Below, in pieces: positions 16,973 to 54,509 of a stretch of 58,842 nt of DNA. Numbering within the stretch: the stretch's first letter is position 1; each line of letters opens with the position of its first letter. The notes beneath the pieces were generated by a model. That model was given only the letters and a program-made list of their open reading frames with translations, ran no database searches and was not told the DNA's origin. Both the position numbers and the translations under genes were made by a program. Source of the DNA: Fonticula alba ATCC 38817 (lineage: Eukaryota; Protista; Nucleariida); NCBI GenBank assembly GCA_000388065.2, contig KB932206.1. One strand, given 5' to 3'.

Positions 16973-17226
16973 TGGAGACAGGCCCGCACCTGCAGGGGAG
17001 GCCAAAGTTGGGAGACAACGCACGCGCAGTCCCCCCCCCCCCCCCCCCCGCGACAGACGCATATCCCCCCGGTCCTGGTACATACGGCAGACCGTGCTGG
17101 GGTCACAAATACACCAGTGTGCCCATTTCCCCACAACATACTGGATCACATGACATGGCATCTTCTCTGGGAGTCCCTTTTCTGGCCCCATGTGCGGGGA
17201 AGATTGCCGCGCGGACGTGGCCAAGT

Positions 17227-17228
<2 letters not shown>

Positions 17229-17286
<58 letters not shown>
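17229..17286. repeat. (CT)n microsatellite upstream of RIT1
   Basis: Uninterrupted CT run of about 58 bp. Confidence 0.95.
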
Positions 17287-17289
<3 letters not shown>

Positions 17290-17497
17290 CCCCCCTCCCT
17301 GCATCACTTTCCCCACTTTCCCGCTCCCAACCAAGCCCCCTCCACCCTCTTTCTCCTCGACAGCACCTCCATTTTTGCCTTCTGCGGGTTCCCGCCGACG
17401 GCGTTGCCCAAGAACGAGAGAGGTATACCGAGCGCGAGAGGTCGACCGAAGGGAAGCGGCCGCCTGCCCGTGCATGTGTGAGGGCAAAGGTGGGACC

Positions 17498-20470: not shown

Positions 20471-23400
20471 ATGTCTACTGGTACGTTGCATGCGCGCCCT
20501 GTCTTGTGCCGCTGGTCTCTCGCCCCCCCCCCCCCTCAGTGTGCCGGTTATTGACCTCCTCGGCTTGGCCTCAACCACCATCGCCCTCCTCGCTACATGC
20601 AGCCGACATTCCCCCCTCCAAGCGGGTCCGCTTCGACGACACCTTCGTCAAGTCCGAGCAGGAACTCAACAAGGCGACCCTGGTGAAGCTGGCCGCCGCC
20701 GCCGCCACGGGCCCACCCCCCTCGGCGACCAAAGCCGCCCCAGTCCCGCAGAAGGCACAGTCCGACTCGTCGGCCCGTACGTCCGCCCATCTAGGGGGCC
20801 ATGTTTTGTCTGACCGCCGCTGCCTTTCCCTGCTCTTGATCTTGCGACTGACCACCTCCCTAGATTCGAATCTCATTTCGCCGGAGGATCGTCCGCTCTG
20901 GGTGACCTGCGACTCGGCGGACGAGAATGCGCCGCTGGTCTTCCTGGAAAGCTTCTCCCCTCTCTACCAGCAGGCATGCGATTTCCTGGTGGCTATTGCC
21001 GAGCCGCGAACCCGGTTCGTGCCAGCACTCTCGCCCCCCCCCCCCCCGCTCCTTTTCTCCCCCGTTCCCACATCCCTGCCCCCTCTGCTCTCTCTCTCCC
21101 TCTCTCTCTCTCCCCTCTGAGATGCCTGCTGACCCCCCCCCCCCCCCCCTCCTGCCCCCCCCCCCCCCGCTGCCACACCCCCCGCCCCTAGTGCACGAAT
21201 ACAAGCTGACCAAGATGTCGCNNNNNNNNNNCCTAGTGCACGAATACAAGCTGACCAAGATGTCGCTCTACTCCGCGGCATCGGTCGGCCTGGAGCCCAA
21301 CAACATTATTGACACGCTGCAGCGCTTCTCCAAGGTCCCGGTGCCGGAGCGTGCCATCGAGATCATCAAGCAGTACATGTCGACTTATGGCAAGGTGCGC
21401 CTGGTGATGCGCGGCTTCCCGATGGAGGCGACCAAGGCGCCGACCATCCGCTTGCAGACACATGACGGTCTGTCGACATCCGCGTCGGCTGGCGGGTCCT
21501 CGGTGACCACTTTCGCGCCGCTGGGACTGCTCGGCGGTCCGGCATCTGCCTTCGAGTCGAATGACGGCCCGCCGAAGCGGGAGTTCCGCTGGTACCTGGA
21601 GACCTACGACCAGAGCATCAGCCAGCGCATTTGCAGCGACCCGCACCTGCAGCAGCTTGTGCGCCAGGTGAATCCGAAAGACGTGGACGAGGCTTTGCGT
21701 CTGGCCCGCGAGGCGACCACGGCCCCGCCCGTGGCCGGGTTCCTGCTGCCAGTGCGCGGCCCCGGGGGTGACACCTTCGGTGACAATGCCGCCATCAAGC
21801 CGGAACCCATGGCCGTGGGTGCCAACTCCGAGGCGATCGTCAAGAAGGACGACCGGGCCGCCTCCTCCGGGCCTGGGGGCGACAACCCCGATGACGATGA
21901 GGATGGGTCTGATGGCGCCGGGTCCGATGGGGACGAGGATGATGACGAGGACGACGATGTCGCGCAGTCCGGCAAGTCCACGCTTCGGCGTAGCCGTCGC
22001 CGCCGCGGGCGCCTCTACATGTTCGAGATCTTGCATCCGATGCACCTGGAGCGGCCGAACATCTTCGACTCGGATTCCGTGTCGATGCCGATTCAGGGTG
22101 GCGGGTCGGCCGCCGCGGTGGCCGGCTCGCGCACGCGCATCCAAAAGATCAAGCAGCTGTGTGACTCGCTGAACTTCCCGGTCTTCGAGGAGTATGCCTT
22201 CCGCGCGGATACCGACTCCCCCACGCTGGATATCGACCTCAAGCAGACCACCATCGTCCGGGACTACCAGCAGCAGTGTCTGAGTAAGATGTTCTCTCGC
22301 GAGTGCGTTGTCCTTTGCCCACGCCCGGTTCCCTCTGTCTCGGTTGCTGTCTTCCTTCCTTTCTCTCGCTCCTTTGGTCCGCGGCCCGAACGCATGATGT
22401 CCTCTCGGCCCGATTGCTCACAATTGTCCACTGCGCTCTGGGGAATGGGAATGACGTAACTGCACTTGTCGCCGCCGCCGCCGCCGCCGCCGATCCCGCT
22501 GCCCCTCTCTGTAGGCGCGCTCGGTCTGGCATTATCGTTCTGCCTTGTGGTGCCGGCAAGACCCTCGTCGGTGTGGCGGCCGCCTCCACGATCAAGAAAA
22601 ACACCCTGGTCCTGGTTAACTCCACTCTCTCGGCCAACCAGTGGCATGGGGAGTTCTCCAAGTGGGCGCACATCAAGCCTCACATCATCGCCGGGGAGGA
22701 CGCCCCAGCGCCGATTATCACCTATCGCGGTGGCTCACGGGTGCGTCGCGCTTGCCCTCCCTCTTTCCCTCCCTCTCTTTCTATCCTTCTCTCTCTCTAC
22801 ATGCACACGCACTCTCACGCGCGCATGGCTTCCCCGACATTTCTCTGTGATTGGTCCATGCCCACTCACATCATCTTCTCGCCTTTTTTTCTCTCGCTGT
22901 CATCTCTGATGGGCTGCTCCCTCGAAGCTTGAGGACTTGAAGCACCCGAGCCTTATTTTCATCACCACCTATCAGACCATCACAAATGTCAAGTCACGCG
23001 TCATGTCCTGGATCGAGCGCGTTGAGTGGGGCCTCGTCATTTTGGATGAGGTGCACTCTGTTCCGGCCGACTGTGCGTTCCCGCCATCTGCCCCCCCCCC
23101 CCCCCCCCCCCCCTGCTGGCATTTCCCGTCGCCCAACACCACCCTCCCCGAAAGAGGGCACCGATACTCACCTCCCTCACACCCGCCCCCCTGCCCTTCT
23201 CCCACCTCCGCCCACCCCTCTGGCTCCTGTCGGCTCCAGCGTATGCTCCGGCTGTGGCTCGAATCCCCACGCACTGTAAGCTCGGCCTCACGGCCACCCT
23301 AGTGCGTGAGGATGGCAAGATCGACGAGATTCTGCAGCAGGTCGGCCCAAAACTTTACGAGGCCAACTGGATGGTTCTCTCGCGGCAGGGCCACATTGCG

Positions 23401-24078
23401 CGAGTCATTTGCGCGGAGGTCCGGTGTCCCCTGACGCCGGCCTTCTGGCGCGAGTACAGCCGCGAGGGCCAGCCCCTCAACATTCGCACCAACTTGCTGA
23501 TGTTGAACCCGGTCAAGTTGCTGGTTCTCCAGGCGCTGCTGCTGCGACACCACGACAAGAAGACCACCGTCTTCGTGGACCGCATTGAGCCGCTGGAGCG
23601 CTACGCCGAGCACTTCCAGGCGCTGGTCATCCAGGGCAAGACGCAGCTGGCCGAGCGCGAGCGCAATCTCCAGCTCTTCCGCGAGGATGAGAATCGTCGA
23701 GTGCTGTTCCTCAGTCAAATTGGTGACACATCGCTGGACATCCCGGAGGCCAGCTGCCTGATCGAGGTGTCGGCCCCGTCCGGCTCTCGTCGACAGGAGG
23801 CCCAGCGACTGGGACGCATCCTCCGGGCCAAGAACCGCAATGACGAGGGCTTCAATGCCTTCTTCTACACGCTGATTGCCGACGGCACTGATGATGTGAC
23901 GCATGCCTCCAAGCGCCAGCAGTACCTCCTGGATCAGGGATACGCGTACAAGGTGGTCCAGGCGGAAAAGATCTTCTCCACCATGAGCCCCGACGAGCGG
24001 TCCCGCTTCCGGAGCATGACTCCCGACGACCAGGACAAGCTCCTGGACATTGTCCGGAACATGGAGCCCCGCTCCTAG
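20471..24078 (+). CDS. ERCC3: TFIIH helicase/translocase XPB (ERCC3/Ssl2/Rad25), multi-exon
   Basis: RPLWV...[82 protein letters not shown] and [16 protein letters not shown]. Confidence 0.95.
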
Positions 24079-35245: not shown

Positions 35246-36739
35246 TCAAGCTGAAAGGGGGCCGCCAGCGACGCACTTCGAACGCAGGGGTGTAGATGAG
35301 GGCCGAGGCCCGAGCCATCAAGTCCTCGCGGAGAGACTGATCGAAGTTGGTGACGAAGAGGACATCCACGCGGGCCAAATGCGGCCCGAGAGCCAGCGCT
35401 CGAGGCGAGCCGTGAACACAGTATGCCTCCACCGCCGCGTCGGTCGACCCAGCTGCCAAGAGGTCCTCGTGTTGCTGCTCCTGCTGCTGCTCCTGCTCCT
35501 GCTCCTGCTCCTGCTGTTGGCGATGGTGGCGGTGATGGTGATAGACAGACACGCGGAAGCCCAGGGGCCCGGTGGCGAAGGCAGCCAGCTCGCGCAAGTG
35601 CTGCACATTCTCACTGACCCGGGAGTCGTAACCCCCAGCCAGGATGAGGACCGGGCGTCGAGGATCGGCGCCGGCCCGATCGGCGTCCAGCCGGCCGGCC
35701 ACCTTGTGATAGCCGGCCAATGCCCGCAGAGCCAGGGCCAGGTCCTTCTTGCGTTCGAAGCGATTGATCGACAGGATGATGGGTCGTGATTGGCTGGCTT
35801 TGACTGATAGGTCGGCCGCCGCCCTGGGCGGGAGGATGGTCTCCGGCGGCAGCAGGGCGGCCAGCTGCCGCGATAATGGGCTGCCGGTGGCCGAACCGCA
35901 ATCCGACGCGCCAACCAGATCCCGAGTCGGGGGGTACAGTACATGCGGCCAGTCGGTGTCCCCGGGAGTCGCCGCCGACGACCGGGGGAAGCTCAGCCTG
36001 AAGACCGTTTGTGTGAAGCGGCTGTTGACTGCCACATCCGAGCAGAGCCCCGTGGCCAGGGTCTCCCATGCATCGAAGAAGCCGCGGTATGCGCCCTTGG
36101 CGGCGGCCAGCAGCGCCCGCCGGGGCGATGGCCCAGTGCCCGTTGCCTCGTCAGCCGGACGCGCCAGCCAGAAGTCCGGGAAGTGGCAGTAATAGAAGAC
36201 CGGCACTCGACCGAGGAAGCGAATGACCGGTGCCCAGGCGACCAACTGGTCAATCACCACAACATCGAAGGGCGTGTCGTTGCCCAGCCGGGCGGCCCAA
36301 ATGTCCCGCAATAGCGCCAAGGCCAGGATCAACCCGCGCACGATGGCGCACAGAAGGTGCCCAGCCCCGGGGCCGGCGCGCGGGCCCCGAGATCCCGGCA
36401 GCCGGAAGGACCGCGGGAAGGCGGATCCGTGGGTCCGGACATCGAAGGACCCGTCGAGGGTTTCCTCAAAGCACCGTTGCCGATCGTAGTGGCTGGTGTA
36501 GATGGTCACCCGGTGCCGGGCGCCGGTCGCGTCGTGTCCATTGGCCAGGCCGTGGGCCGCGTCGACAATGAGGCGCTCCGCACCGCCTGGCGGGGGTCAG
36601 TGATTATACGGTCTCGGGGCGGGCAAGTGAAAATGTATCCAGGAACAAGCCGGGCAAGTGGATGGGGGGGAGGCCTACCAAGACCGAGGTCCGGATGGAC
36701 GAAGGCCACACGCAGCGGCCGCTCGCCAGGAGGCGCCAT
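34381..36739 (-). CDS. ALG2: Alpha-1,3/1,6-mannosyltransferase ALG2 (GT4), multi-exon
   Basis: [29 protein letters not shown]...CFEET, FYYCHFPD, VNSRFT, SINRFERKKDL, AGGYDSRVSENV and YTPAFE-HFGIAPLEAM. Confidence 0.95.
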
Positions 36740-37040
36740 CGTGTGCTACAGGGCCGATGAGGAATCGGCCAGGACAGGGAGGGGTGGAGCAGAAGAGAGG
36801 GCGGAGAGCAGTAGAGAGGGGGGAAGAGAGAGAGAGAAAGAGAAAGAGGGAAAGACAGGCGAGGTGCGCAGCATGTCCTGGTGGGCGCATCATCCCAGTG
36901 CCTGCATGTTACAGCTCCTCGTCAACCATATAGGGCGATGCAAGACAGCCAGACATCCTCTTCAGAAAATCAGACACAGAACCCGATCATGATCGAGGGT
37001 TGGCCCATGTCTCCCAGACCAAGAAGTAGCTTGGGGAGGG

Positions 37041-37076
<36 letters not shown>

Positions 37077-37480
37077 ACAGGGGAAGGAAAAGGCCAGGAG
37101 ACAGGACGGCCTCCGCCTGGAGAAGATGTCCTAAGGAGGTGCCAACGAAGATTGTCGCGTGACCAGACCATGAGGATGACCCCCCGCGCTTGCTCGCTGG
37201 CCGCGCTGCCGCGTTTCCCTGCCCCGTCGCCCGTGGGCCAGATCTGCGCCCATCAGACATTGGAACGGATCTCCGGGGGGGGGGGGGAGGGGGGGACACA
37301 GGGGAAATGCTCTTGGGCCTGTGCCCCGCCGGCCCCAGTCGGGCAACGGCGCAAGCCTCATCCAGCCTCCACATCAGCCTCCCCCATCCTACCTTGCTTG
37401 GCTTCCTCCCCCCCCCCCCTCCTCCTCCCTTCCCCTACCCGCTCCTTCTCCTCCCTCTCCTCCTCTCCCCATCAATTGCC
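36740..37480. promoter_or_regulatory. Putative bidirectional promoter ALG2 / UTP11
   Basis: Head-to-head start codons ~740 bp apart, with a purine-rich to pyrimidine-rich switch in between. Confidence 0.55.
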
Positions 37481-37774
37481 ATGACGACCAACTCCGGTCG
37501 GAAGGTCATGAAGACCATCCGCCGCCCCTACCGGGAGCGGCCTCAGCTGCCGGGCCGTCGGAAGCTCGGTATGCTGGAGAAGAAGCGTGATTACACGGTC
37601 CGCGCTCGGGACCACCAGCAAAAGCGCGACCGCCTGAAGAAGCTGGAGCAGGCGGCCCGACTGAAGAATGTCGACGAGTTCACCTACGGCATGATCAATG
37701 CCCAGATGAAGGTGCGCGTCTGGCCGGCGACAAAGCCCATCCATGGGGCGCAACATTGCTGGAGCTGTTCAGCT

Positions 37775-37807
<33 letters not shown>

Positions 37808-38764
37808 AACTTCTCCTCCACCTTGCCCCCGGTCGTCCGGCCTTGTGTCGTGCATGGCGATGCTGTCTCTTCGGCGCGGGGCATCGGGATGGCCTTCGCA
37901 CTTGTAGGGCGGTGTGCACAAGTTTGCCGAGCGTGATGAAAACCTCACCGAGGAAGAGAAGAAGCTGATCGGCACTCAGGACGCCACTTACATGCAGCTT
38001 CGCGTGTCCCAAGAGCAGAAGGTACGTGCTCTGGCACGCGTCCACAATCCATGCAGCACTATAGCCCCCTCCCCCCCCCCCCCCCCCCCCTCCATGAGGA
38101 GTACCATTTGAGGGTGCTCTCCTTTCTCACCTCCCTTCCCTGCTCCACTCCGCCTGTTCACTACAGAAAATTGAGCGCCTCCGCGAGAACCTCCACTTCG
38201 TGGATGTGGTGACCAAGAAGCGCGCCGAGGACTCTGGCAAGGCTGTCTTCCTGTCCAAGGAGGAGGCCCGCCAGCTGGCCGCCGCGTCGAAGCTCGGCGA
38301 CACCGAGCTGAAGAAGACCCTGAAGGCCATGGTCAGCGCCACCGGCGCTGCCGACTCGTCTGACACCTCCGACGTCGAGGATGTTGTCCTCTCGGACGAT
38401 GAGCAGGAAACCCTCCCGACCTCCATCACCAATCTGGGTGACCTCAAGGTGCGCTGCCGGGCGTCTGCCCCTCTTCCCCGCCATGCATACACGCGCCATT
38501 GCCTCATTGTCTGTCTCACACGGAGACATTTCTCCCCCTCGAAAGAGCATTGTCCGTGCACGGGATCGTGCATACGCCGAGCTTCAGGCGCGTGTGAACC
38601 GTGTCGAGAAGATCAAGAGCATCAAGAATGAGGTTGATACGCGGCGCGGGCTGCAGGCCGCGCAGTCTCGCCTCCGTGGCCATGCCGGCGGCGGCATCAA
38701 GAAGATCGGCACCGATGCCCGGGGCAACAAGGTCTACAAGCTGGCCAAGGAGCGCCTGCGGTGA
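37481..38764 (+). CDS. UTP11: U3 snoRNA-associated protein 11 (SSU processome), multi-exon
   Basis: RPYRERPQLPGRRKLGMLEKKRDYTVRARD...NVDEFTYGM, LIGTQDATY, KIERLRENLHF and C-terminal VYKLAKERLR. Confidence 0.9.
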
Positions 38765-39350
38765 TTTCCTCCCCCGCAGAATGTGCTTCTTCTCTCCTTC
38801 GCTTTCTCCTTGCGGCGAGCCGGCATGAATGTGCTCGCACCCCTACCAGCTTCCGGGTGAGGGGAACGTGGGCGGATGAAAAGAAACACCAACAACAGCC
38901 CTGTCGCGCATGTGGTGGCAGGGACCTGCCTCAAATAGATCCCAAAATGTGTGTGTGGCGTGTGTGTGCGTGCGTGTGTGAAGCCCAACTTGGAGCCTGG
39001 GGATCGCATGTGCAGAACATCGCACAGCCACTGGCTGTCAAGAAAAAAGATGGCCCAATGCCCCACTCCATCTCTGTCTTTTATCTTCCTTCCATTTCCT
39101 GCCTTTTGCCTCCTGTGAGAGTGAGGGGAGGTTCCTTCCGGAGCGTATCTATTGATCTTGAAGGAAGAACAAGCGATGGGAAAAGTACGGGGAGAGGGGG
39201 GGGAGGAGGGCAATGCACAGGAAATCCATCATACAAGATGCGATACACCCACACCCACACACCCGCACACACCCACCAAGTCTGTTGGCTACCGGCGAAT
39301 GCCGGCGAATGCCCCGTCGCCCGCATGACCGAGGAGGGACCGGCGATCGC

Positions 39351-40018
39351 TCAGAGGAGGCGCTCCAGGACGGCCGCATCGTCCGGGGTAACACGACCCT
39401 TGTAGTAGCCAGACACGACGAGGCCTGCCTCGCCGGGGAAGGGCGCCGCACCCTCAGGAAGGGGCGCCGGGGTGAACCCCTGTGCGGCATAGAAGGCCCG
39501 GGCCCCGCTGTTGGAAGTCTGCACATGAAGGAAGACACGCGCCGAGGTGAAGGGGGAGTCATCGGAGGCGGCCTCGCGCGACAGGTGGCCCCGCGTCCAG
39601 GCAATCAGACTGGACACCAGCTCCGAGGCAACCCCGGAACGACGATAGGCCGGCAGCACGCAAAGGGTCAGGATCTCCACGGCGAAGGTGCTGGACCCGG
39701 CCGGGGTGACATCGCGACCGAAGATGCACCCGACAGCGGCATCATTATAGTAAGCTGGGAGTGGTTGTTGGGGGGAGAAGATGGGGGAATCCAGCATGTA
39801 CGTGGGCAAATGTGTGCTTTGGTCAGAGAGAGNNNNNNNNNNGGCAGACCATTGAGCAACGCACCGATACGAGAGAAGACCGACCCGGTGGTCTCGATGG
39901 CCTTCTGGAAGAAGGTGTCTGAGTAGACCACCGGCAGCGAAGAGCTGTGGATCTGGCGGAACTGCCCCAGGTTGTTGGGGTAAACCTTGTCGATGGACAC
40001 CGGGGAGCGAGAGGACAT
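39351..40018 (-). CDS. NAA50: N-alpha-acetyltransferase 50 (NatE/San-like GNAT), 2 exons
   Basis: PNNLGQFRQIHSSSLPVVYSDTFF, AYYNDAAVG, EILTLCVLPAYRRSGVAS, FLHVQTSNSGARAFY..GF and GYYKGRVTPDDAAVL. Confidence 0.85.
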
Positions 40019-40597
40019 GATGCGAACAGGCGGCCGGGCGGGCGAGCGGGCGGGTCTTTGTGTGCGTGCACACGCGCGATCGAAGCGAGGTGCAGGGGGT
40101 GGAGGAGGAGGAGGGAGGAGGGCAAGGGCAGTAGGCAAGGATGCACCGCCCCGCCGGGGGCTCGGGGCCAGCGCGGGAAGGCGCCTTTTCGGAAATATCA
40201 CCCAGCATCCGGTATATCATCATGTGATGGTCATCTGACGCATCACGGGCTCTTGGATGGAGGGTTGGCGTGTCGCGTGGCGGCAGGGTTTTCCGGTCGG
40301 CGCCCAGGACCGCGCGCGCCCTTTTTCCCTCGGCCACCGGGCGGGGTCCGATGTGCGGGTTGGCCGCGTGCCCCCCCCCCCCCCCCTCTGGGTGGTCTTT
40401 TTCGTTGTGCTTCTGCCCGAGAGTGTGTGTCCACGTAGGGGGGAGCGCGGTGTGCACACGAGTGTGCGCGCATTCACCCCGGAGGTCCTCCCGAGGCTGA
40501 AGGAAAAGCCGGCGGGGGAGACCGCCGGCCCACCGCCCCCCTCCCCCAGGGCGGGGTGAGGGGGGGGCTGGACGGGACACACGGCGAGCCCGTATGG

Positions 40598-40628
<31 letters not shown>

Positions 40629-41118
40629 CTGGTCCGGCACCTGGACCCGCGGCTTTTGCCCCCCTGGCTGGACACCCACATGTGCCGGACCGCGCGGGGG
40701 CTTTTTTCGGGGGCACCTGGCGCAGCCTCTCGTCCCGAGAGGGCCTCCCTCTCCGTCGCCTCCCCAATCTCCTTTTGTTCTGCACACAAGGCGCCTGTCG
40801 AAGCGATCGCACCACCTTGTACCTCCCTCCCTCCCGCCCCCTCTCTCGCCCCCTCTCTCGCCCCCTCTCTCGCCCCCTCTTGCCATCCTCTCTCCTCCTT
40901 TTCCGCACCCCTTCTATGCTCCCTCTTGCAACTTCCCCCGGACCCCCCCCCCCCCCCCCCCCCGCGCGCGCGCGCCTCTCCTTGTTGTCTGCCTTTTTCT
41001 TTCCTTTTTCCTCTCTCTGCTCCCGCCTCACTGCTGCGCCCTGCACACACGCACATACATCCGCATTTTTCCCTCCCCACCTAACCCTCTACTCACGCAC
41101 GCGCTTGCTCGCAGAACC
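40019..41118. promoter_or_regulatory. Putative bidirectional promoter NAA50 / NOP58
   Basis: Head-to-head start codons 1.1 kb apart. Contains a 12-bp CCCCCTCTCTCG repeat x3 (~40838-40880). Confidence 0.55.
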
Positions 41119-43326
41119 ATGCTCGTCCTCTTCGAGACCTCCGCTGGTTACGCCCTCTTCTCGGTGAAGAACGAGTCCAAGCTCGCTGACACCGACTCCA
41201 TCTGGAAGGAGTTCGAGACTGCCGATAAGGCCAACAAGCTGTACGCATCTCCCCCCCCCCCCCACACACACACACGCACACACACATCCTGTGCACATAT
41301 ACATGCATATATGTATTTGTATTTCGCCTGTCATTGACCATCACCGGCCTTCCACCTGCACAACCCCACAGCGTCAAGCTCCAGGCTTTCGGCAAGTTCC
41401 AGAACACCACCGAGGCTCTGTCCGCCGCCACCGCCCTCCTCGACAACAAGGTCCCCAAGGGTGCGCACACGTGGCTACGCCCTCCCGCTGGTCCCCTTTG
41501 CCAATCCCCCTCCGCCCCGCCGGCATCTACTTACCCCTCCTCCCCTCCCCCCCTCCTCACCCATGGCCGCCCGTCCACTTGCCACCCTCAGAGCTCAAGA
41601 ACTTCCTCAAGAGCGAGGTCCTCAAGAAGAACCTGACCGATGAGCTGGCCGTCGCTGACGCCAAGCTCGGCGGTGTCATCAAGGAGAAGCTCGGCATCGC
41701 CTGCAAGCACAACGATGCCATCAACGAGCTGATGCGCGGTATCCGCTCCCAGTTCTCCAGCCTCATGAGCGGCCTCCCCGAGGAGGAGCTCGTCGCCATG
41801 CAGCTCGGTCTGTCCCACTCTCTGTCCCGCTACAAGCTCAAGTTCAGCCCCGATAAGGTTGACACCATGATCGTCCAGGCCATCTGTGCGCACGCTCCCT
41901 CTTCCCTATGTCAGACCCCCCGGGGCGGGGGGGGATGTGATGGGGCGGAGTCCTCTCTGCCCCCCCCTCCGCCCTTTGCCGCCGCTGCCCCCCCCCCCCC
42001 ATGCCCCCATACCCGTGTACTCACCCCCGACCGTGTGCGCAGCCCTCCTCGACGACCTCGACAAGGAGCTCAACACCTATGCCATGCGCATCAAGGAGTG
42101 GTACGGCTGGCACTTCCCCGAGATGGGCAAGGTGATCATCGACAACCTGGCCTACGCCAAGACCGTCCGCACCATCACCACTCGTGACAAGGCCGCCACC
42201 ACCGACCTGTCTGCCATCCTCCCGGAGGAGCTGGAGAAGGAGGTCAAGGAGCTGGCCGAGATCTCCATGGGTACTGAGGTGCGTGCCTGCGAATGTTGTC
42301 GCCGATCTTCCCTCGCACGCATACACACACACACACACACACATGTGGGCGAGCGGATGGAAGCATGTCACACGCGCCCCTCCCCGGGACTGACACACCA
42401 ATAACCCACACGACCGCCGGTGGTGATCAATCCCCCCCTTCCCCCCCCCCTCCCCCCTCGCCCACAGATCAACGAGCAGGATATCACCAACATCATCTAC
42501 CTGTGCGACCAGGTGATCGCCCTGTCGGAGTACCGCGTCCAGCTGTTCAACTACCTGAAGAACCGCATGCAGGCCATCGCCCCCAACCTGACCGTCATGG
42601 TTGGTGAGCTGGTCGGCGCGCGCCTCATCGCCCACGCCGGCTCCCTCATGAACCTGGCCAAGCAGCCCGCCTCCACCGTGCAGATTCTCGGTGCCGAGAA
42701 GGCCCTCTTCCGTGCCCTGAAGACCAAGCACGACACCCCCAAGTACGGTCTCATCTACCATGCTTCCCTGATCGGCCAGGCGGCTCCCAAGTTCAAGGGC
42801 AAGATTTCTCGTGTCCTGGCTGCCAAGACCGCCCTGTCCATCCGTGTGGATGCCCTCGGCGATAAGGACTCCGTCGACATCGCCACCGAGGCCCGCGCCA
42901 AGGTCGAGGCCCGTCTGCGCCAGCTCGAGGGCAAGACCCGCCTTTCTCTCAACAAGCCCTCCGTGGCCGCCACCGAGGAGGCTGAGGCTGCCCCGTCCAA
43001 GAAGCGCTCCTCTTCGTCTGACGGTGCGTCCGTGTCTGCGCATATGCGCGTCTGTGTGTGTGTGTGTGCCCGTGCTTGTGGGACCCCGCAAGCACGGGCA
43101 TATATACCGCGCCCGCGCGTCGCATCCCCCCTGTGTCTGCATGCATGCCACTTTTAGTGCCCCTGTGCTCGCGCCGTCCCACTCACCAGCATATTCTCCC
43201 CGCGTGTCGTCCCGCACATGTTCTCACCCTGCCTCGCCGTGCGCCCCCCCCCCTTCCCCTTCGCAACAACAAAACACAGACGGTGAGAAGAAGAGCAAGA
43301 AGAGCAAGAAGAGCAAGAAGGACTAA
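41119..43326 (+). CDS. NOP58: Box C/D snoRNP core protein NOP58, multi-exon
   Basis: [114 protein letters not shown] and a basic KKSKK tail. Confidence 0.97.
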
Positions 43327-44380
43327 GGAGGTCAGGCAGCTCTCCCCGCTCCCATGGCCGGCTCCCTCCGCGCTGTGTGTCGGCGCTGTGTGCCCCCTCC
43401 CTCCTCTCTCTCTCTCTCCCTCTCCACATGCGTACACACGCACATCCCTGCCCCCATGCCCGCGTGTGCGCAGTGACCTGTAGAAAATTGACGGCCATCC
43501 GCGTGCTGATTTGCCCGTTTCTCCTTGTGCTGGGATGTTGGTGTTTGTGTTTTTCTTTTTTTTTGCGGGCGCGGCGCGCTCCGGTGGTTGGGCCACATCG
43601 AGAGGGGGACATTTTGCCAGGCGCACAGGTGAGGCTGGTGTATAGAAGCTTGCGGCACGCCACAAGCATCAGGGGGGAGTCACAAGAATGGAGACCGGAG
43701 GGGGGGGGGGGAGGTTCTGCACGCGGCCGTGCCCGAGAGGGGGCGAGACGGAGATGGAGATCACCACAGAAAAGCTCCTTTTTTATGTGCCCTATACTGG
43801 GCTTTTGGATGCTGTTTGACTGCCCGTTTGAGGGCGGGGGATCCTTGCCGCCGGGGGAGGGGTCTGGGCATTCTCCGACCGTGATCCCCGGCCACCGTGC
43901 AAGTACAGCACGTGATGGCCCCGGGGCTCGGAGTGGGCCCCATGCTTCCAGCGTATTCCTCGGATGCCCTGCCTCAGCCCACGGATTCTATTCCTCCAAC
44001 ACACGGCCAAGCGGCGCTTGTCTCGGTCTCGCTGATCGCTGGGGGTGATACCCCCGCCGCCCACTTTGTGGCATTTCCAGTTCACACCGAGGAGCCCGGG
44101 CTGGCGCGTGTAGATCACCGCATTTGGCGCGTTCTGCCCTGCTCTTCTCTGGGGCGCTGCTCCAGCCGCAGGAAGGGGGCGCTTGCACTTCCATTACATC
44201 TGGCATGCCCGCCATGCCCCGGGACAGGGGCCAGAAGCGGGGCGAGTGCTGTGTGCCACGCTGGGCATGTGTCGGGTATCACGCGGAATCTGAGGGCGCC
44301 ATTTTGAATTGCGACTTCGCGGACCTGGACCACCGTATAAGAAGGCCGCCGACGGGCCCAGTCCATCGGATATTTCTTTA

Positions 44381-44600
44381 GTCGACCGTACTCTAGGGAT
44401 CATTTCTATAGTATGTGTCCTCGTCAAGTTTACCCAAACTAGACATCAACAAACCCCAGGACGATGAGCAATAGCGATGCTTCCCGAGCGCGAAGCGTGC
44501 CCGTGGTTGTTGCCTCTTGGCATCTGACGGCGTTGGCAATTGATGACCGTGCCGCTGGCCCTTGCAGCCTTCGGCAGGGTTGCATCGCAATCTGACTGGC
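44381..44600 (+). ncRNA. U3: U3 snoRNA (box C/D, SSU processome)
   Basis: Begins GTCGACCGTACT (GAC/box A'), similar to yeast U3. Box A GGATCATTTCTATAG is at 44397-44411, box C' GATGA at 44463-44467, box B GAGCGCGAAG at 44486-44495, box C TGATGA at 44541-44546 and box D CTGA at 44592-44595. Terminal stem CCAG (44456-59) / CTGG (44596-99). Order and spacing are typical of U3. Confidence 0.95.
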
Positions 44601-45002
44601 ACCCCTTTTTTCCTTTTAATAATCGAAACCCTCACTACTCGCTGCGTTGGCATTCCGGCCATCATGTGCTCCCTCTCCGCGTGTCCCGCCCTCCTCCGGT
44701 TTCCGTGTCTTCCTGGCTCCCCGCTTTTTTCTTCGCCCTCACACGCCTTTGTGTGTGTGCGCGTGTGTGGGAGGGGGCGGGGGGGGAGCACGAGGGCGCA
44801 GCGGACGTGTCACCCCGCACCTGCCCCCGCCGATTGCGGGCCGTCCGCGAGCGCGCCTGTACACCCGCCGCTGCAAATCCCGGGCGCACCCCCAGCGACT
44901 GTCGGCGGTGGCCGAGCGGACAACCCCGCAGACAGAGGGTCGCCATGCGTGGTTCGCCGCGCCGAGAAGATCTCGCCTCCATGTTGCAGCAGTAGGTGAC
45001 CA

Positions 45003-45003
<1 letters not shown>

Positions 45004-45075
<72 letters not shown>
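45004..45075. repeat. Poly-G homopolymer (~72 nt) upstream of TSR3
   Basis: Directly visible. Confidence 0.9.
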
Positions 45076-45076
<1 letters not shown>

Positions 45077-45266
45077 TGGCGCGCCGCGATCTCACCGCCC
45101 CCGAGGCAGGAAACCTGTTGCCTGAAAAACAGGCGCCTATCGCACCGGGAGCGCCCGGGGGCCGATCGTCTCGCCACTCTTCCTCCCCCCCCCTCCCACA
45201 CACACACGCACGCACGCACGCACGCACGCGCATCCCACCTTCTCTCGTATATACCTCTTCCTCAGC

Positions 45267-46772
45267 ATGCCGCCCAAGAAGTCGTCCGGCACAGCCAAGC
45301 GGCCGCAGGGGCGCCCCTCAGCCGGTGCCTCCACCGCCATCAAGGGCCTCTCCGGGACTCGGCACTCCCATACCCGGTGCGTACTTTTNNNNNNNNNNNN
45401 NNNNNNNNNNNNNNNNNNCCCCCCATCCTCCAGCTCCACCCCCTTCGCCTTCTCCCGCGACCTGCCTTCTGTGATCCCCTGCCAGCGAACTGACCCTCCG
45501 CGGCCCACAGCAAGGCCATCCGGGAGGATACCGAGACCTTTGACAACTATGTGGCCGATGTGACGGCCCCGATGTCCAAGCTGCAGATCGGCGCCGAGCC
45601 GGTCACCGACGATTTGGTCGATGGTCTCCCGCGCGACCTGCATGACCGAATCTTCTCCGGGCTTGAGGTTACCTACGCCGATGAGCATGGCGCTGGTGCC
45701 GAGGCTCGCGTCGACCTGGCGATGTGGGTGCGTACCTCCCCTCCTCCGCCCCCTTGCCTTGGAGCTGCCGCATGCCCTTTCCTCTTGGCTGACTTGCTCC
45801 TCCCTTTGGGAAATTCCCCGGCCGCCTGCCTCCCTCCCCTCCGCCCTGCGAATGCAGAACTTCGAGCAGTGTGATCCGCGCCGGTGTAGTGGAGCCAAGC
45901 TCGCCCGCGATGGTGTTATCCGGGAGATCCGCGTCAACAAGCGTTTCCCTGGTGTGGTGCTCACGTTCGTTGCCTCTCCCTCCCTCCCTCCCCCCCCCCT
46001 CCCTCTCTCTCTCTCCCCTGCGCGCGCACATTTTTTGCGCACGCACACACACACACACATAGACACGCTTCCTGGCATTTCAGACTCTCATGCTGACCCA
46101 AATCCCTCTATTTCACACATGCGCAGCCCTAACGCCACGCGTGCGGTCTCGCCAGCTGACCGGGACATCGTCCTCGCCCATGGCGCCTGCGTGGTGGACT
46201 GCTCTTGGGCTCGTCTGCAAGAGGTCCCCCTGGTCAGCCTGAAGACCCCGCACCCCCGACTTCGTACGCCCGGCCTTGGCTGTCATCCCGCATGCTCCCT
46301 TCCCCTTCTCCTGCTTCGATACCCATCGAACTTACACCTCTCGTACCCCTCGCGACCACCCTTTCAAGTGCCGTTCCTCGTGGCCGCCAACCCGGTGAAC
46401 TATGGCCGTCCGCTCCGCCTGAACTGCGCTGAGGCTCTGGCCGCCACTCTCTATATCGTCGGCCTGGATCACCATGCTGAGCGTGTGTTGTCTCGCTTCA
46501 AGTGGGGCATGCAATTCTACCACCTCAATCAGTGCGTCCTCTCTGCCGGGCCTGTGTATCACCCGAGGCCGTGCGCGCCCCACGGCTTCGCGCACCTTCC
46601 AACGCACACTAATCCATGCACACGCACACACGCACGCAGGGAGATCCTCCGCCGCTATGCTGCTTGTAAGGATAGCGCCGAGATTGTCGAAGTCCAGCAG
46701 CACTATCTCGAGGCGATGGCTCGCGAAGGCGAGGAGCGCCGTCAGGCCCGTATGTCTCTCTCTCTCTCTCTC
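45267..46772 (+). CDS. TSR3: 18S rRNA aminocarboxypropyltransferase TSR3, multi-exon, 3' end lost in an N gap
   Basis: [72 protein letters not shown] and [10 protein letters not shown]. Confidence 0.93.
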
Positions 46773-47440
46773 NNNNNNNNNNNNNNNNNNNNNNNNNNNN
46801 NNNNNNNNNNNNNNNNNNNNNNNNNNNNNNNNNNNNNNNNNNNNNNNNNNNNNNNNNNNNNNNNNNNNNNNNNNNNNNNNNNNNNNNNNNNNNNNNNNNN
46901 NNNNNNNNNNNNNNNNNNNNNNNNNNNNNNNNNNNNNNNNNNNNNNNNNNNNNNNNNNNNNNNNNNNNNNNNNNNNNNNNNNNNNNNNNNNNNNNNNNNN
47001 NNNNNNNNNNNNNNNNNNNNNNNNNNNNNNNNNNNNNNNNNNNNNNNNNNNNNNNNNNNNNNNNNNNNNNNNNNNNNNNNNNNNNNNNNNNNNNNNNNNN
47101 NNNNNNNNNNNNNNNNNNNNNNNNNNNNNNNNNNNNNNNNNNNNNNNNNNNNNNNNNNNNNNNNNNNNNNNNNNNNNNNNNNNNNNNNNNNNNNNNNNNN
47201 NNNNNNNNNNNNNNNNNNNNNNNNNNNNNNNNNNNNNNNNNNNNNNNNNNNNNNNNNNNNNNNNNNNNNNNNNNNNNNNNNNNNNNNNNNNNNNNNNNNN
47301 NNNNNNNNNNNNNNNNNNNNNNNNNNNNNNNNNNNNNNNNNNNNNNNNNNNNNNNNNNNNNNNGGGGGAGAGGGGGGCAGACGAATGGTGCGCACCCCGT
47401 CCGCTCGGAGAGGCAAAGCAAGGCCAGGGACACGTGCTCC

Positions 47441-48911
47441 CTACTCCTCAACAACGATCACCTCGTTCAGGGCCTCCAGGCCGCCAAGGGCCTCACAGGC
47501 AAAGCCACGGATGAAGTCCGCCTCGATCGGGTGGAGCTTCGGGCCAACCAGCACCAGGCTGTGCAGGGGGCCACCGAAAACCTCGTCGCACTCGGCCTCG
47601 GCGAACTTCTCCAGAGGAGCAGCCACGATCACCTGGGTGGAGGCACCGACGCGAGACATGCCGATGGCCAGGGACTTGGGAGCGCAGACTGGTGTCACAG
47701 AGAGCAGGCGGTTGCGTGTCAGACACATGCGTGTGCGTAGGTGTGCCCCCATGGGGCCGACGCCAGCCCACCTTAAGAGAAAGAGAAAGAGAAAGAAAAG
47801 GGAGGAGGAGGAGGAGAGAGAGAGAGAGAGAGCCAGGGAGAGAGGGAAGAGAGAACGCACCACCCTCGTCGCGGCGCTCCTCAATCAGAAGGAGCTGCTC
47901 GGCGGCCTGGCGGACGGTCATGAAACGGGGAGGCTCATAAATCTTGCGGCCACTATGTTCACACGGAGAGCCGGGGGCAGGGGCAGAAGAGTGGGTAAGT
48001 TGAGGGCTTGCCGGCCAAGGGCGGCGGGTCCAAGGTTTGGGGTGCGGAAGAAAAAAAGAAGAAGAAAAAGGCAACGACGAACCGGGCCAGGTTGATCTCG
48101 GACTGCTCCTTGACCTTGATGTCCAGCAGGGCCAGGGTATGGAGGCCAGCATCACGGTTGGACTTGATCCGGGGGTAGAAGGAATCCGGCTGCCAGGTCT
48201 TGGTGAAGAAGGGGATGGAGATCGTCTGGCCGAAGGAGTACAGCTGGAGACCGCAGCAGGCGATGGCGTTCATGATCGAGGCATTGTGGATGACATGCAC
48301 GGGGATGTTACGCTCGCGCGCACGCAGGACCATGTCGGTGTGGGTGGTCGCGCTGGTGGCAAGGCCCAGGCCGACGGAGGGGGACGGGGTAGTTGATGAA
48401 GGGAGAGAGAGAGAGGGGGGGGGGGGACAGCAAAGGGAAGCAGGAAAGACGGGAGGGGGTAAGTGCCGGGCACACCACAACAGAGGCTGAAACATGGGGC
48501 CGGGACATACCCGAACGGATCGCCAACGACCAGGAAGGCAACCTCCTCACCGGCGGCCGCCGCGTCCAGGATCTCATCAGACCCCTGCTCGACGAGCTCG
48601 CGGTCGGCCAGCAGAACCGGCACGCCGTAGAACTCCTCCTACAACAGCGAGAGCCGGGAGGACGGCGGAGAGGAAGAGGACGCCCCGGATGTACGTGTGT
48701 GTTGTGTGGTGTCGGGTTTTCCCACAAGTCAGCAGGGGCGTGCAATGGGCGAAGGCGCAACAAGCATGCGTACCAGCTCCTCCTTGGGGCAGAGCAGGAT
48801 GCTGGTGTAAGCCTCGAGGAAAACCTTGGTGCACTTGCGCACGGTCTCCAGACCGCGAACAGTGATGTCCTTGGCGTCGGAGAGGCCAAGGCCGATGATG
48901 TGAAGGGACAT
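47441..48911 (-). CDS. DPH5: Diphthine methyl ester synthase DPH5, multi-exon
   Basis: [103 protein letters not shown] and FGGPLHSLV. Confidence 0.97.
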
Positions 48912-49813
48912 GGCGAGAGGGGCTATGGGAAGGACAGGCGGGCAGGTGTATGGAAGGGGAGGCGGGGTGCAGGAAGTTCGCGGCCGCCGCATTGGCTCGA
49001 ACAATGGCTTTTTTTTTTTTCCCGGCTCGTTGGGCGGGTATCGGGGGGGGGGGGATCTCTGTTCCCTCCACCCCGGAGGATCTCGTCTCCGGGCATGCTT
49101 GGCCCTCTTTCTCGGCTCGGAGAACGCCGACAAGGCGGGACACTCCCGCGCGGGAGTGGCCACGCGTCCCCATATCACGCGCCGTCACGTGTCACATTCC
49201 GATCGCGCCTGTCCTCGGCTGTCTCACCACCCCGGCGCGACCCTCGGAAATAGGCGGAGGAATCATCTTCGCCCACTGGCCTCCTCACCCCGGGGGGGGG
49301 GGGTGAGAACGAGCTGGCCCAACGGCGAGCGGCATGCTTCTCGGGCCCCGGGCCAGGGAACAATTCACGGGCAGATCTCGGCCTCGGGGCCCCCTGCGGT
49401 GTGCCGCTGAGGCGACCATCGCGGCCCAGCAACCGGGGCAGATCGTGGTCGCCGGGGGCCGGGGCCCCGGGGGAGCTCCGCCGGAGCAAATGCCTTGGCG
49501 TACTCGACGGGGCGGGGAGAGGGCGAGGGGATGCGAGCCGACACACCAGGCGTGGACGGGGCGCCGCAGGGAATTATGACCCCGACCCCGCGTCGTCATA
49601 TTGTGGGGTTTTATTTCGCCCACCGACCACATCCATCCTCCAGGCGGCGTGCCTCGCACCACGCTTGCACCCCCTCCCCCCCCCCCTCCTCCCTCCTTCC
49701 CCCTCCGCCCGTAACTGCGCCTCCGCTCAATTGCCAGGGCGCCGCGCCTCCTTCCCCCCCCCCTCCCCGCCTCCTTGTCTCTCTGACGGCTGGCCGCCGT
49801 CACCTGTGTGAGG
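48912..49813. promoter_or_regulatory. Putative bidirectional promoter DPH5 / PEX11
   Basis: Head-to-head start codons ~900 bp apart, with G-runs on the left and C-runs on the right. Confidence 0.5.
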
Positions 49814-50428
49814 ATGCAGCAGCTCTTCCATACGCTGAACGGCCGGGACCGACTCCTGCGCCTGGTCCAATACCTGGCCCGGTACCTGGCCCTACGGGGG
49901 CATTCAAAGGACGCCCCGCTGCTGGGCGTATCTCCCGCCCAGTGGTCCCAGGTGGCATCCAACATTTCCTTCTGTCGGAGAGGTGTGTGTGTGTGTGTGT
50001 GTGTGTGTGCCCTGTCGCCCCGCCGGCCGCTAGGCGTCCTGTCGGACCTCGACCGCCCTCGCTTCCCTCCTCTCCTCCTCCACATACACACACATGCGCG
50101 TGTGCTAACCACCCTCCTTGCCCAGTCTTTTTCTTGGGGAAGTTTGTCGACACGTGGCGCGCCTGCCTGGCCGAGGTGCTGCGCATTCTCCGCCTCTTCC
50201 GCGCCTTCCAAGCCAAGACCCGGCCCCTGACGCCCGATGAGCACACCCTCCAGCTGATTGATGTGGTCTCGCGGCTGCTGGAGGTGCTGAAACTGGTGCA
50301 GCTGGGGCTCTGGCTTTTTTGCGACACCATCCAAACGGTCCGTCGGTGCTGTCGCCGCTGCTGTTGGCGTCATTGGCACCTTTGCCGCAGTGCTGTGCCT
50401 TTGCCCCCTGCCGCGCCCCTCTCTCTCA

Positions 50429-50459
<31 letters not shown>

Positions 50460-50917
50460 GCGCGCGTGCCCGTCCCCGCCTCGTCTGCCAGGTTGTGGAC
50501 CTCGGGACCTTCCGCCTGGGCTTCCAGGCTCGACTGAGTCTCCTTTCCTCGAGGCTGTGGCTCAGCTACCTGGTGACCTCGCTGTCGCAGCAGCTCTTCT
50601 TGCGGATATTTGTCAACCACCAGTTTTTCATGCGCCTCAAGGACGCCGGCCAGGGTGCCTACACCGGGCACCAATTTTCGCCGGTCGACACGCTGCGAAA
50701 CGCCCTGGATTTCCCCCTCCCATCACAGGGGCTTGCTGGGCTGCTTGCGCGCGAGGGCTCCTCCAATGGATCCATACCTCTGGGCCCGGACTGGCGGTAC
50801 ATCCGGGGCTTGGACTCGGTGGCCCGGCTGATATCCGGTGCGGTTGGACCGCGTGGAGTCGCCGCCTGCGGCATAGCCTCCTCCTGCGTTGCCGTCTACC
50901 AGACGCTATGGCCATAG
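49814..50917 (+). CDS. PEX11: Peroxisomal biogenesis factor PEX11-like, multi-exon
   Basis: N-terminal NGRDRLLRLVQYLAR, S..RR-VFFLGKF, DTLRNALDFPLP and C-terminal GIASSCVAVYQTLWP. Confidence 0.75.
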
Positions 50918-52711: not shown

Positions 52712-54509
52712 ATGTACTCGGTCTATCTCTGCCTCGGTCTGTTGGCCGTGGCGCCGATCGTGGCCGCCTCCTACATGGCTCCCCCGGTGATCGGCGGCAA
52801 GACGCCCAAGAAGTCCGCCGCGGTGCGCCCAACAGACATGCCTGCTTGATTGGCCCTACTTCACCTCCTGCGCCCCCATCTATCCCTCCCTCTCCCCCCT
52901 CCCCCTCCTCGCCCACTCCCGCTAACACACATACACACACACACACATACATACGTAGGCTGAGGTCCTCGGCGAGTTGGACGCCTACACCTTCCCGATC
53001 TACGGGTCGATTATGCTCTTCAGTCTCTTCCTCATTCTGAAGTATGTGCCGAAGGAGTGGTCGGTTCTGGCCATGAAGGGTGCGCCGTGGTGTTTGTCGT
53101 CCCACTTGGGCGGGGTGTCCTGCCGCCATGTCGCACTAGACACCACCCCCTGAAGAATGAGGCTAACCGCGCTGCCCATGCGCTCTGCCCATGTAGCCTA
53201 CTTCACCCTGATGGGTGTCTTCCTCACTGTGGACACCCTGCGCGACGTGATGATCGGCGGTCTGGCGCGCATTGGCATCAAGGTCCCCGACTACGAGGCC
53301 ATCTCCCAGCAGGCTGAGGGCGCGGCTCCCGCACTCGACGGCAGCCTCTTCGGCCGCCTGACCCGCCCCTACCACCTGCGCCTGTCGCGCTTCGGGTCTT
53401 CCGAGTGTGCGCACCGACGTCACGTCAGCCCTTCCCCCTCCTCTCCTCCTGACGCCTCTGGCCCTCTGACCAACCACTGTCCCCTGCCGCTCCTCCTCCT
53501 CTTGGGTCCCCTCTTTCTCCCCGAAGATCTCTTCGAGCTGGACTTCGACATCTTCCACCTGCTCAGCATGGCCATCACCCTGCCACTGAATGTGGCCTTC
53601 TTGATGACCGGCAACTGGATTGTCAACAACATCCTGGCGCTGCTCTTCTCCTACCGCGCCCTTTGCTCCATGCGCATCGACACCTTCCGCACCGGGTTCA
53701 TCCTCCTGGTGGGGCTCTTCTTCTACGACATCTTCTGGGTCTTCGCCACTCCGGTCATGGTGCATGTGGCCAAGAACATTGACGCCCCGGTCAAGCTGGT
53801 CTGGCCGTCAGTGGGCGCCGATGGGGCGGTTCGCTTCTCCATGCTCGGTCTTGGGGACATCATTATCCCAGGTGCGTGGCGCTGAACATGCGCGCAACGA
53901 GCGCACTGTCCAGTCTCCCTCCTCCCTCTCCCTCGAGCGCGCGCGCATACACACAGACACACACTTCCCCCTCGCCGCTCCTCCTCTGACGCACTCTCCC
54001 CCCTGGGGCAAAAAGGCATCTTCATCGTCCTCACGATGAGCTTCGATCTGTTCCTCAAGAAGAAGCGCATTCTGGCCGACCTCAAGCGCAAGTCGCCCGA
54101 CGTGCAGAACCCCTCGCTGCCAACCATCTCCGTCTGGACGCACGGGGCCAATGTGTACTTCCGCTCGGCCATGCTGGCCTACTGCCTTGGCCTGGTGGCC
54201 ACCGTTGTGGTGATGATCTTTTTCAAGTCGGCCCAGGTGCGTAGGCACACATGCGCACAAAGATACCCAATGACATTCATGGCCTCTGACACCCTGACAA
54301 CCACCACCACTACCACCACTACCATCACCCAGCCTGCCCTGCTGTATCTGTCCCCTGCGTGCATTGCCGCGGTGGCCATCCCGGCCTTCCTGCGTGGCGA
54401 GTTCAAGGACGTCCTTTCCTTCAACTCGAGCTCCTTGGAGGAGGACGAGCCAACCCCCGAGGCAACCGGTGCGGCGGCCGTCACTGCCGACGCCGACAAG
54501 ACCGACTAG
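52712..54509 (+). CDS. HM13: Signal peptide peptidase (presenilin-type aspartyl protease, A22B), multi-exon
   Basis: DAYTFPIYGSIMLFSLFLILKY, NWIVNNILA, catalytic YD (GLFFYDIFWVF), GLGD (SMLGLGDIIIPG) and QPALLYLSP motifs. Confidence 0.92.

Follow-up and report, generated by a model that had tools for sequence, protein, structure and literature searches.

The locus studied here raises the question of whether genes for ribosome assembly that lie side by side in the protist Fonticula alba form a functional unit or are neighbors by chance. The stretch analyzed, referred to as the window, comprises 58,842 nucleotides (nt) of assembly GCA_000388065.2, contig KB932206.1, and public gene calls were transferred to it through a 21,403/21,403 identity over positions 35267-56669. 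About 11.4 kb of the window hold UTP11 (+), an NAA50-like acetyltransferase gene (−), NOP58 (+), the gene for the small nucleolar RNA (snoRNA) U3 (+), TSR3 (+) and DPH5 (−). U3 RNA is central to the assembly of the small ribosomal subunit. A preliminary description of this DNA had read these genes as an operon-like, non-random cluster of ribosome-biogenesis loci. All six loci are present with the order, coordinates, strands and identities that it gave, four of them on the plus strand. The locus appears to be a real neighborhood of separately transcribed genes, not an operon.

RNA contigs from four small runs, derived from two samples (2012) and compared over positions 39843-45388, bear directly on the operon question. 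The same NOP58 mRNA occurs in all four runs, with five GT..AG introns within the coding region, and its exons join into a stop-free frame of 447 amino acids (aa), equal to the length of the public product. The NOP58 contigs end at 43490-43515, and in run X2 a loose end of 28 A residues marks a polyadenylation (poly(A)) site at 43506, about 875 nt upstream of U3. Slight RNA signal extends past this site to about 43717. Between 43728 and 45207 no contig is found in any of the four runs; these are probably poly(A)-selected libraries, and contigs show presence rather than absence. A separate contig of about 1.3 kb begins near 45240, shortly before the start codon of TSR3 and about 640 nt downstream of U3. 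U3 is itself absent from the contigs of the four runs, which is expected because such libraries do not keep small non-polyadenylated RNA.

If the cluster were operon-like, NOP58, U3, TSR3 and perhaps UTP11 would derive from one read-through precursor, with U3 processed from a 3′ extension of NOP58. The short spacing of the four plus-strand loci and the contigs that run beyond the main NOP58 poly(A) site are compatible with this, but the NOP58 contig ends, one of them with a poly(A) tail, the contig-free interval before the start of the TSR3 contigs, the TATA-like element and T6 tract that U3 itself possesses, and the minus-strand gene between UTP11 and NOP58 all argue the other way. No single transcript across the member genes is present among the poly(A)-type contigs. 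We regard a shared precursor as very improbable. The operon-like character proposed in the preliminary description is not supported, nor is read-through from NOP58 into U3, of which the contigs give no positive sign.

The identity of NOP58 is clear from its comparison with solved structures in the PDB, where human NOP58 scores 238 bits, NOP56 165 and PRP31 86. The product combines NOP5NT and Nop domains with a lysine-rich tail of KKS repeats. Upstream of the annotated start, RNA contig depth is about 80-140 at 40768-41137. A joint between 40818 and 41115 in one run suggests an unannotated exon and intron in the 5′ untranslated region (UTR). If this intron is real, NOP58 transcription probably starts near 40770-40818. 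Other joints near the NOP58 start, such as that from 40388 to 40935, cross C-runs and look like assembly noise.

U3 matches its Rfam model over the full length (positions 1-219 of the model), at 111.1 bits (E 6.7e-24) where the gathering threshold is 34, and is the sole RNA gene found in an Rfam scan of the whole window. The sequence and the Rfam alignment together reveal the conserved boxes, namely the 5′ GAC/A′/A, C′, B/C and D elements. A sensitive Rfam search of 36700-49900, aimed at snoRNAs within introns, returned none besides U3, and U3 itself lies outside all RNA-supported introns and beyond the NOP58 poly(A) site. Protein-only annotation does miss this gene, as had been foreseen: the public gene list has no entry between NOP58 and TSR3. 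At present, the practical value of the analysis is a corrected local annotation, with U3 placed between NOP58 and TSR3 and its neighbors treated as separate transcripts.

Two elements flank U3 closely. TATAAG, a candidate core promoter element, lies some 45 nt before the U3 5′ end and occurs twice in the window on both strands together (TATAWR occurs 14 times on the plus strand), and the T6 tract just past the 3′ end is one of 16 plus-strand runs of at least six T in 57.5 kb. As each would be improbable at its position by chance (about 0.003-0.006 for either element), we infer from the sequence that U3 is likely a small-RNA gene in its own right, equipped with a TATA-like element and a T-tract that belong to it. 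The T6 tract is followed by an A/T-rich stretch (44601-44625) in a genome of about 64% G+C, and this combination hints at termination by RNA polymerase III. U3 is transcribed by RNA polymerase II in yeast and animals and by RNA polymerase III in plants, and a T-tract is the kind of terminator used by RNA polymerase III, as for plant U3. Type-3 polymerase III promoters have a TATA element about 30 nt upstream. Polymerase III termination of U3 is known in plants and is not known in fungi or animals. A polymerase III-made U3 in F. alba, if true, would be unusual for an opisthokont. Farther downstream, an unbroken run of about 70 G (45007-45076) lies between U3 and TSR3, flanked by microsatellite-like CA, GT and ACGC stretches at 44750-44770 and 45198-45230.

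With separate transcription units, what remains of the original proposal is co-regulation through adjacency. Neighboring growth-regulated promoters may share a local chromatin or regulatory environment, as in the paired ribosome-biogenesis genes of yeast and other eukaryotes. Such an environment could bring the expression of U3 into closer step with that of NOP58, its core protein, and of two other factors in 18S maturation, and the gene order would have originated in the Fonticula lineage. We hold this weakly selected form of co-regulation tentatively, at just short of an even chance. A stronger version, in which a single U3 gene moved beside NOP58 and two 18S-maturation factors, the linkage was selected so that one chromatin neighborhood sets their supply, and U3 is made by polymerase III, seems unlikely.

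How often such a neighborhood would arise without selection was gauged by simulating genomes of about 6,300 genes (an assumed number) in random order, in which 75-250 genes formed the class of small-subunit or ribosome-biogenesis factors. In the F. alba locus, NOP58 and TSR3 are consecutive called protein genes, and one gene separates UTP11 from NOP58. At least one run in which three of four consecutive protein genes belong to the class appeared in 3-66% of random genomes (7-66% for a class of 100-250), and the protein-only cluster is therefore unremarkable. The position of U3 is nominally less expected. For a single U3 gene with a class member as each of its neighbors, the nominal probability is 1.4e-4 to 1.6e-3, and it falls to 7e-6 to 2.4e-4 if another class member is required within the next two genes; both values are post hoc, refer to a pattern chosen afterwards from a very large scan, and scale with U3 copy number. 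The claim of non-random clustering thus holds only in part: U3 between two small-subunit factors, with UTP11 nearby, is nominally unlikely, while the protein genes by themselves need no special explanation. The case for clustering gains little from DPH5, the acetyltransferase gene or the PARN-like gene farther away.

Pure chance would make these genes neighbors in a gene-dense region, without selective or regulatory meaning, and the coincidence would have surfaced through the sheer size of the scan, which covered 765 windows in F. alba and about 250,000 in all and admitted many conceivable kinds of functional cluster. The simulated frequencies of protein-gene runs fit this explanation, as do the two of six loci (acetyltransferase and DPH5) that are not ribosome-biogenesis genes and the lack, at the other eukaryotic loci compared, of synteny and, in this locus, of a common promoter motif. 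It accounts less readily for a U3 gene placed between two protein genes of its own pathway, one of which encodes a core component of the U3 particle, and ribosome-biogenesis gene adjacency has been documented as non-random in several eukaryotes (PMC3500266). Coincidence is a serious candidate in our estimate, somewhat below even.

Several results weigh against selected co-regulation. The U3 probability is post hoc and hinges on the assumed gene number, class size and single U3 copy, and an unrelated acetyltransferase gene sits within the cluster. Four TSR3 loci, taken as the gene with 10 kb on either side in Spizellomyces punctatus, Allomyces macrogynus, Blastocladiella britannica and one further NCBI assembly, are without NOP58, UTP11, DPH5 or U3. 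The NOP58 loci of Kockovaella imperatae, a metagenome contig and ‘Eukaryota sp. TZLM3-RCL’ are likewise without the partner genes. A scan of metagenomes with the conserved U3 5′ motif yielded 120 loci in 482 kb, and 12 of the 13 longest were recognized by Rfam as U3. None of the 120 has NOP58, TSR3 or UTP11 in its available flanks, a comparison of low power since only 28 extend at least 3 kb upstream. In the regulatory regions, a search for the PAC, RRPE, E-box and DRE motifs and for 8-mers common to at least three regions covered five intergenic intervals (GT4/UTP11, acetyltransferase/NOP58, upstream of U3, upstream of TSR3, and DPH5/PEX11). The four known motifs show no pattern there, and the only shared words are low-complexity C-runs and CT-runs; with three promoters, this comparison has little power.

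The preliminary description had looked to synteny with other eukaryotes and to a shared promoter motif for confirmation, and neither is found in these comparisons, the first at seven TSR3 or NOP58 loci that are all distant from F. alba and at the environmental U3 loci, with no nucleariids included, and the second at low power. Among organisms with assemblies, those closest to F. alba are Parvularia atlantis (GCA_943704415.1) and Nuclearia thermophila; the seven loci compared come from more distant sources. The distances involved are considerable: the best non-self TSR3 match is only 34% identical, and none of the environmental U3 loci is close to F. alba U3 past the first ~40 bases. A representative search with the Nop domain returned matches from plants, birds and other groups and was of little use for finding relatives. 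The UTP11, NOP58, U3 and TSR3 genes are not known to be linked in yeast or human. Linkage is missing at all loci compared and therefore does not appear to be ancient; as far as these distant comparisons tell, the arrangement would be specific to the Fonticula lineage.

An assembly artefact was also considered, in which scaffolding across N gaps would have joined genes that lie apart in the real chromosome. Three gaps fall within the finding. The largest, 591 N long (46773-47363), separates the stop codons of TSR3 and DPH5, which converge on each other, and is bridged only by scaffolding, so that the adjacency of DPH5 depends on scaffolding alone. The other joins argue against an artefact. The sequence is unbroken from UTP11 to the first acetyltransferase exon, and a further unbroken stretch, which includes NOP58 and U3, runs from the second acetyltransferase exon to exon 1 of TSR3. 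A gap of 10 N (39833-39842) lies inside the sole acetyltransferase intron (39755-39864, GT..AG, minus strand), whose donor, 39865, coincides with the end of an RNA contig; the exons on either side make one NAA50-like protein. A gap of 30 N (45389-45418) lies inside intron 1 of the public TSR3 model (45377-45510, GT..AG), whose split codon fits the public protein; from this model and from the fitting length of the RNA contig that begins in exon 1, we infer that the TSR3 transcript is continuous over the gap. No reading frame depends on, or is broken by, any of the three gaps, and an artefact is considered very unlikely. Both intron donors that were read, at 39864-39859 (minus) and 45377-45382, are GTGCGT, with C at +4.

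Taken together, selected co-regulation and coincidence are about equally likely. The genes appear to be transcribed separately and their arrangement was not found in the organisms compared, and the locus is therefore a modest curiosity rather than an operon. Were the arrangement selected, the known pairing of ribosome-biogenesis genes would extend to a case in which a non-coding RNA neighbors the gene that encodes its core protein. F. alba, a deep-branching relative of fungi, would then also provide a small and testable system in which to study how cells balance the RNA and protein parts of one particle.

Table 1. Genes, transcript features and U3 elements of the Fonticula alba locus (positions in the window)
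Feature	Position	Strand	Basis or remark
GT4 glycosyltransferase	to 36739	−	called gene
UTP11, small-subunit processome component, 281 aa, introns	37481-38764	+	called gene, PF03998
GNAT acetyltransferase, NAA50-like, 185 aa, one intron; not ribosome biogenesis	39351-40018	−	
Probable NOP58 5′-UTR intron (GT..AG)	40819-41114	+	joint in one run's contig; weak
NOP58 coding region, 447 aa, six exons	41119-43326	+	RNA contigs in four runs
NOP58 exons	41119-41240, 41372-41459, 41591-41885, 42043-42276, 42466-43022, 43279-43326	+	
NOP58 3′ UTR, poly(A) site near 43506	43327-43515	+	contig ends
TATAAG, candidate U3 core promoter element	44336-44341	+	~45 nt upstream of U3 5′ end
U3 snoRNA, full length	44382-44600	+	Rfam RF00012
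U3 GAC and A′/A boxes	44384-44413	+	read from sequence
U3 box C′, GAUGA	44463-44467	+	read from sequence
U3 box C, UGAUGA	44541-44546	+	read from sequence
U3 box D, CUGA	44592-44595	+	read from sequence
T6 tract, candidate terminator of RNA polymerase III type	44606-44611	+	starts 6 nt past U3 3′ end
TSR3, 18S ribosomal RNA aminocarboxypropyltransferase, 261 aa	45267-46669	+	Fer4_RLI + Ribo_biogen_C
DPH5 (diphthine synthase), 291 aa, translation-related; not ribosome biogenesis	47441-48911	−	TP_methylase
PEX11	49814-50917	+	called gene
Signal peptide peptidase	52712-54509	+	called gene
CAF1-domain, PARN-like gene	from 54814	−	called gene; PARN nearest, weakly

The identities of the neighboring genes are supported by Pfam scans of exon open reading frames (ORFs), which accord with the public gene calls. 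In UTP11, three exon ORFs match profile positions 1-65, 75-106 and 176-242 of PF03998. The TSR3 product, which carries this name in the public record, has a Fer4_RLI-like domain followed by Ribo_biogen_C. The DPH5 product carries PF00590, and one of its exons matches the diphthine synthase structure 3i4t (E 4e-6), a weak match from a search with exons only. Among solved structures, NAA50 gives the best matches to the acetyltransferase, as had been proposed, with a weak score (E 4e-6). The acetyltransferase frame stays open for about 870 nt upstream of its annotated start (40019-40886, minus strand), which gives an ORF of 511 aa if the gap is read through. This extension is probably a spurious high-GC open frame, because the RNA contigs reach only to about 40136.

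Outside the cluster, the PARN homologue noted earlier corresponds to the CAF1-domain gene on the minus strand, for which PARN is the nearest match, at low score. Ten long ORFs upstream of 36.7 kb, searched with Pfam, include a PH-domain protein, an ATG9-like protein (weak), RIT1 and XPB, and no ribosome-biogenesis gene; the GT4 gene and a giant ORF upstream are likewise not ribosome-biogenesis genes. The RIT1-type gene, for a tRNA A64 ribosylphosphate transferase, lies at 16973-19813 (+; Rit1_C E 1e-39), and exons of an XPB/ERCC3 helicase lie at 23050-24075 (+). An exact-product look-up of the PARN-like ORF and the giant ORF gave no match for either, and these ORFs therefore differ from public products. 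Exon finding by GC3 proved too weak in the F. alba genome.

The locus can be compared with several known systems. Like the U3 genes of yeast, animals and plants, F. alba U3 is a stand-alone, intron-less gene with a TATA-like element upstream, and it shares with the polymerase III-transcribed U3 of plants a T6 tract just past its 3′ end. In contrast to type-3 polymerase III promoters, where the distance is about 30 nt, its TATA-like element lies about 45 nt upstream. A literature search for adjacency of U3 and NOP58 genes found no report. In the human genome, SNORD86 resides in an intron of NOP56, so that a box C/D RNA is hosted by the gene for a core protein and takes part in cis autoregulation (PMC11028025). 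F. alba U3, a box C/D-class RNA, is likewise physically linked to the gene for a core box C/D protein, an arrangement that could couple the supply of RNA and protein. However, it is not intronic; it lies about 875 nt past the NOP58 poly(A) site and has promoter- and terminator-like elements of its own.

The closest parallel is the pairing of ribosome-biogenesis genes in the rRNA and ribosome biogenesis (RRB) regulon described by Arnone, McAlear and colleagues, which is known in eukaryotes and is associated with tighter co-regulation (PMC3500266). These pairs are adjoining genes in tandem, divergent or convergent orientation that remain separate transcription units (PMC3500266). F. alba NOP58 and TSR3 resemble them as immediate protein-coding neighbors, with UTP11 one gene further. 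The F. alba locus differs in having a non-coding gene, U3, within the pair and in bringing together three pathway proteins rather than two. It differs as well in the support behind it: the yeast cases are backed by co-regulation and conservation, whereas the F. alba likeness is one of adjacency only. The locus is best seen as a further example of a known gene arrangement, with one unusual feature, the gene for an RNA of the same pathway in its middle.

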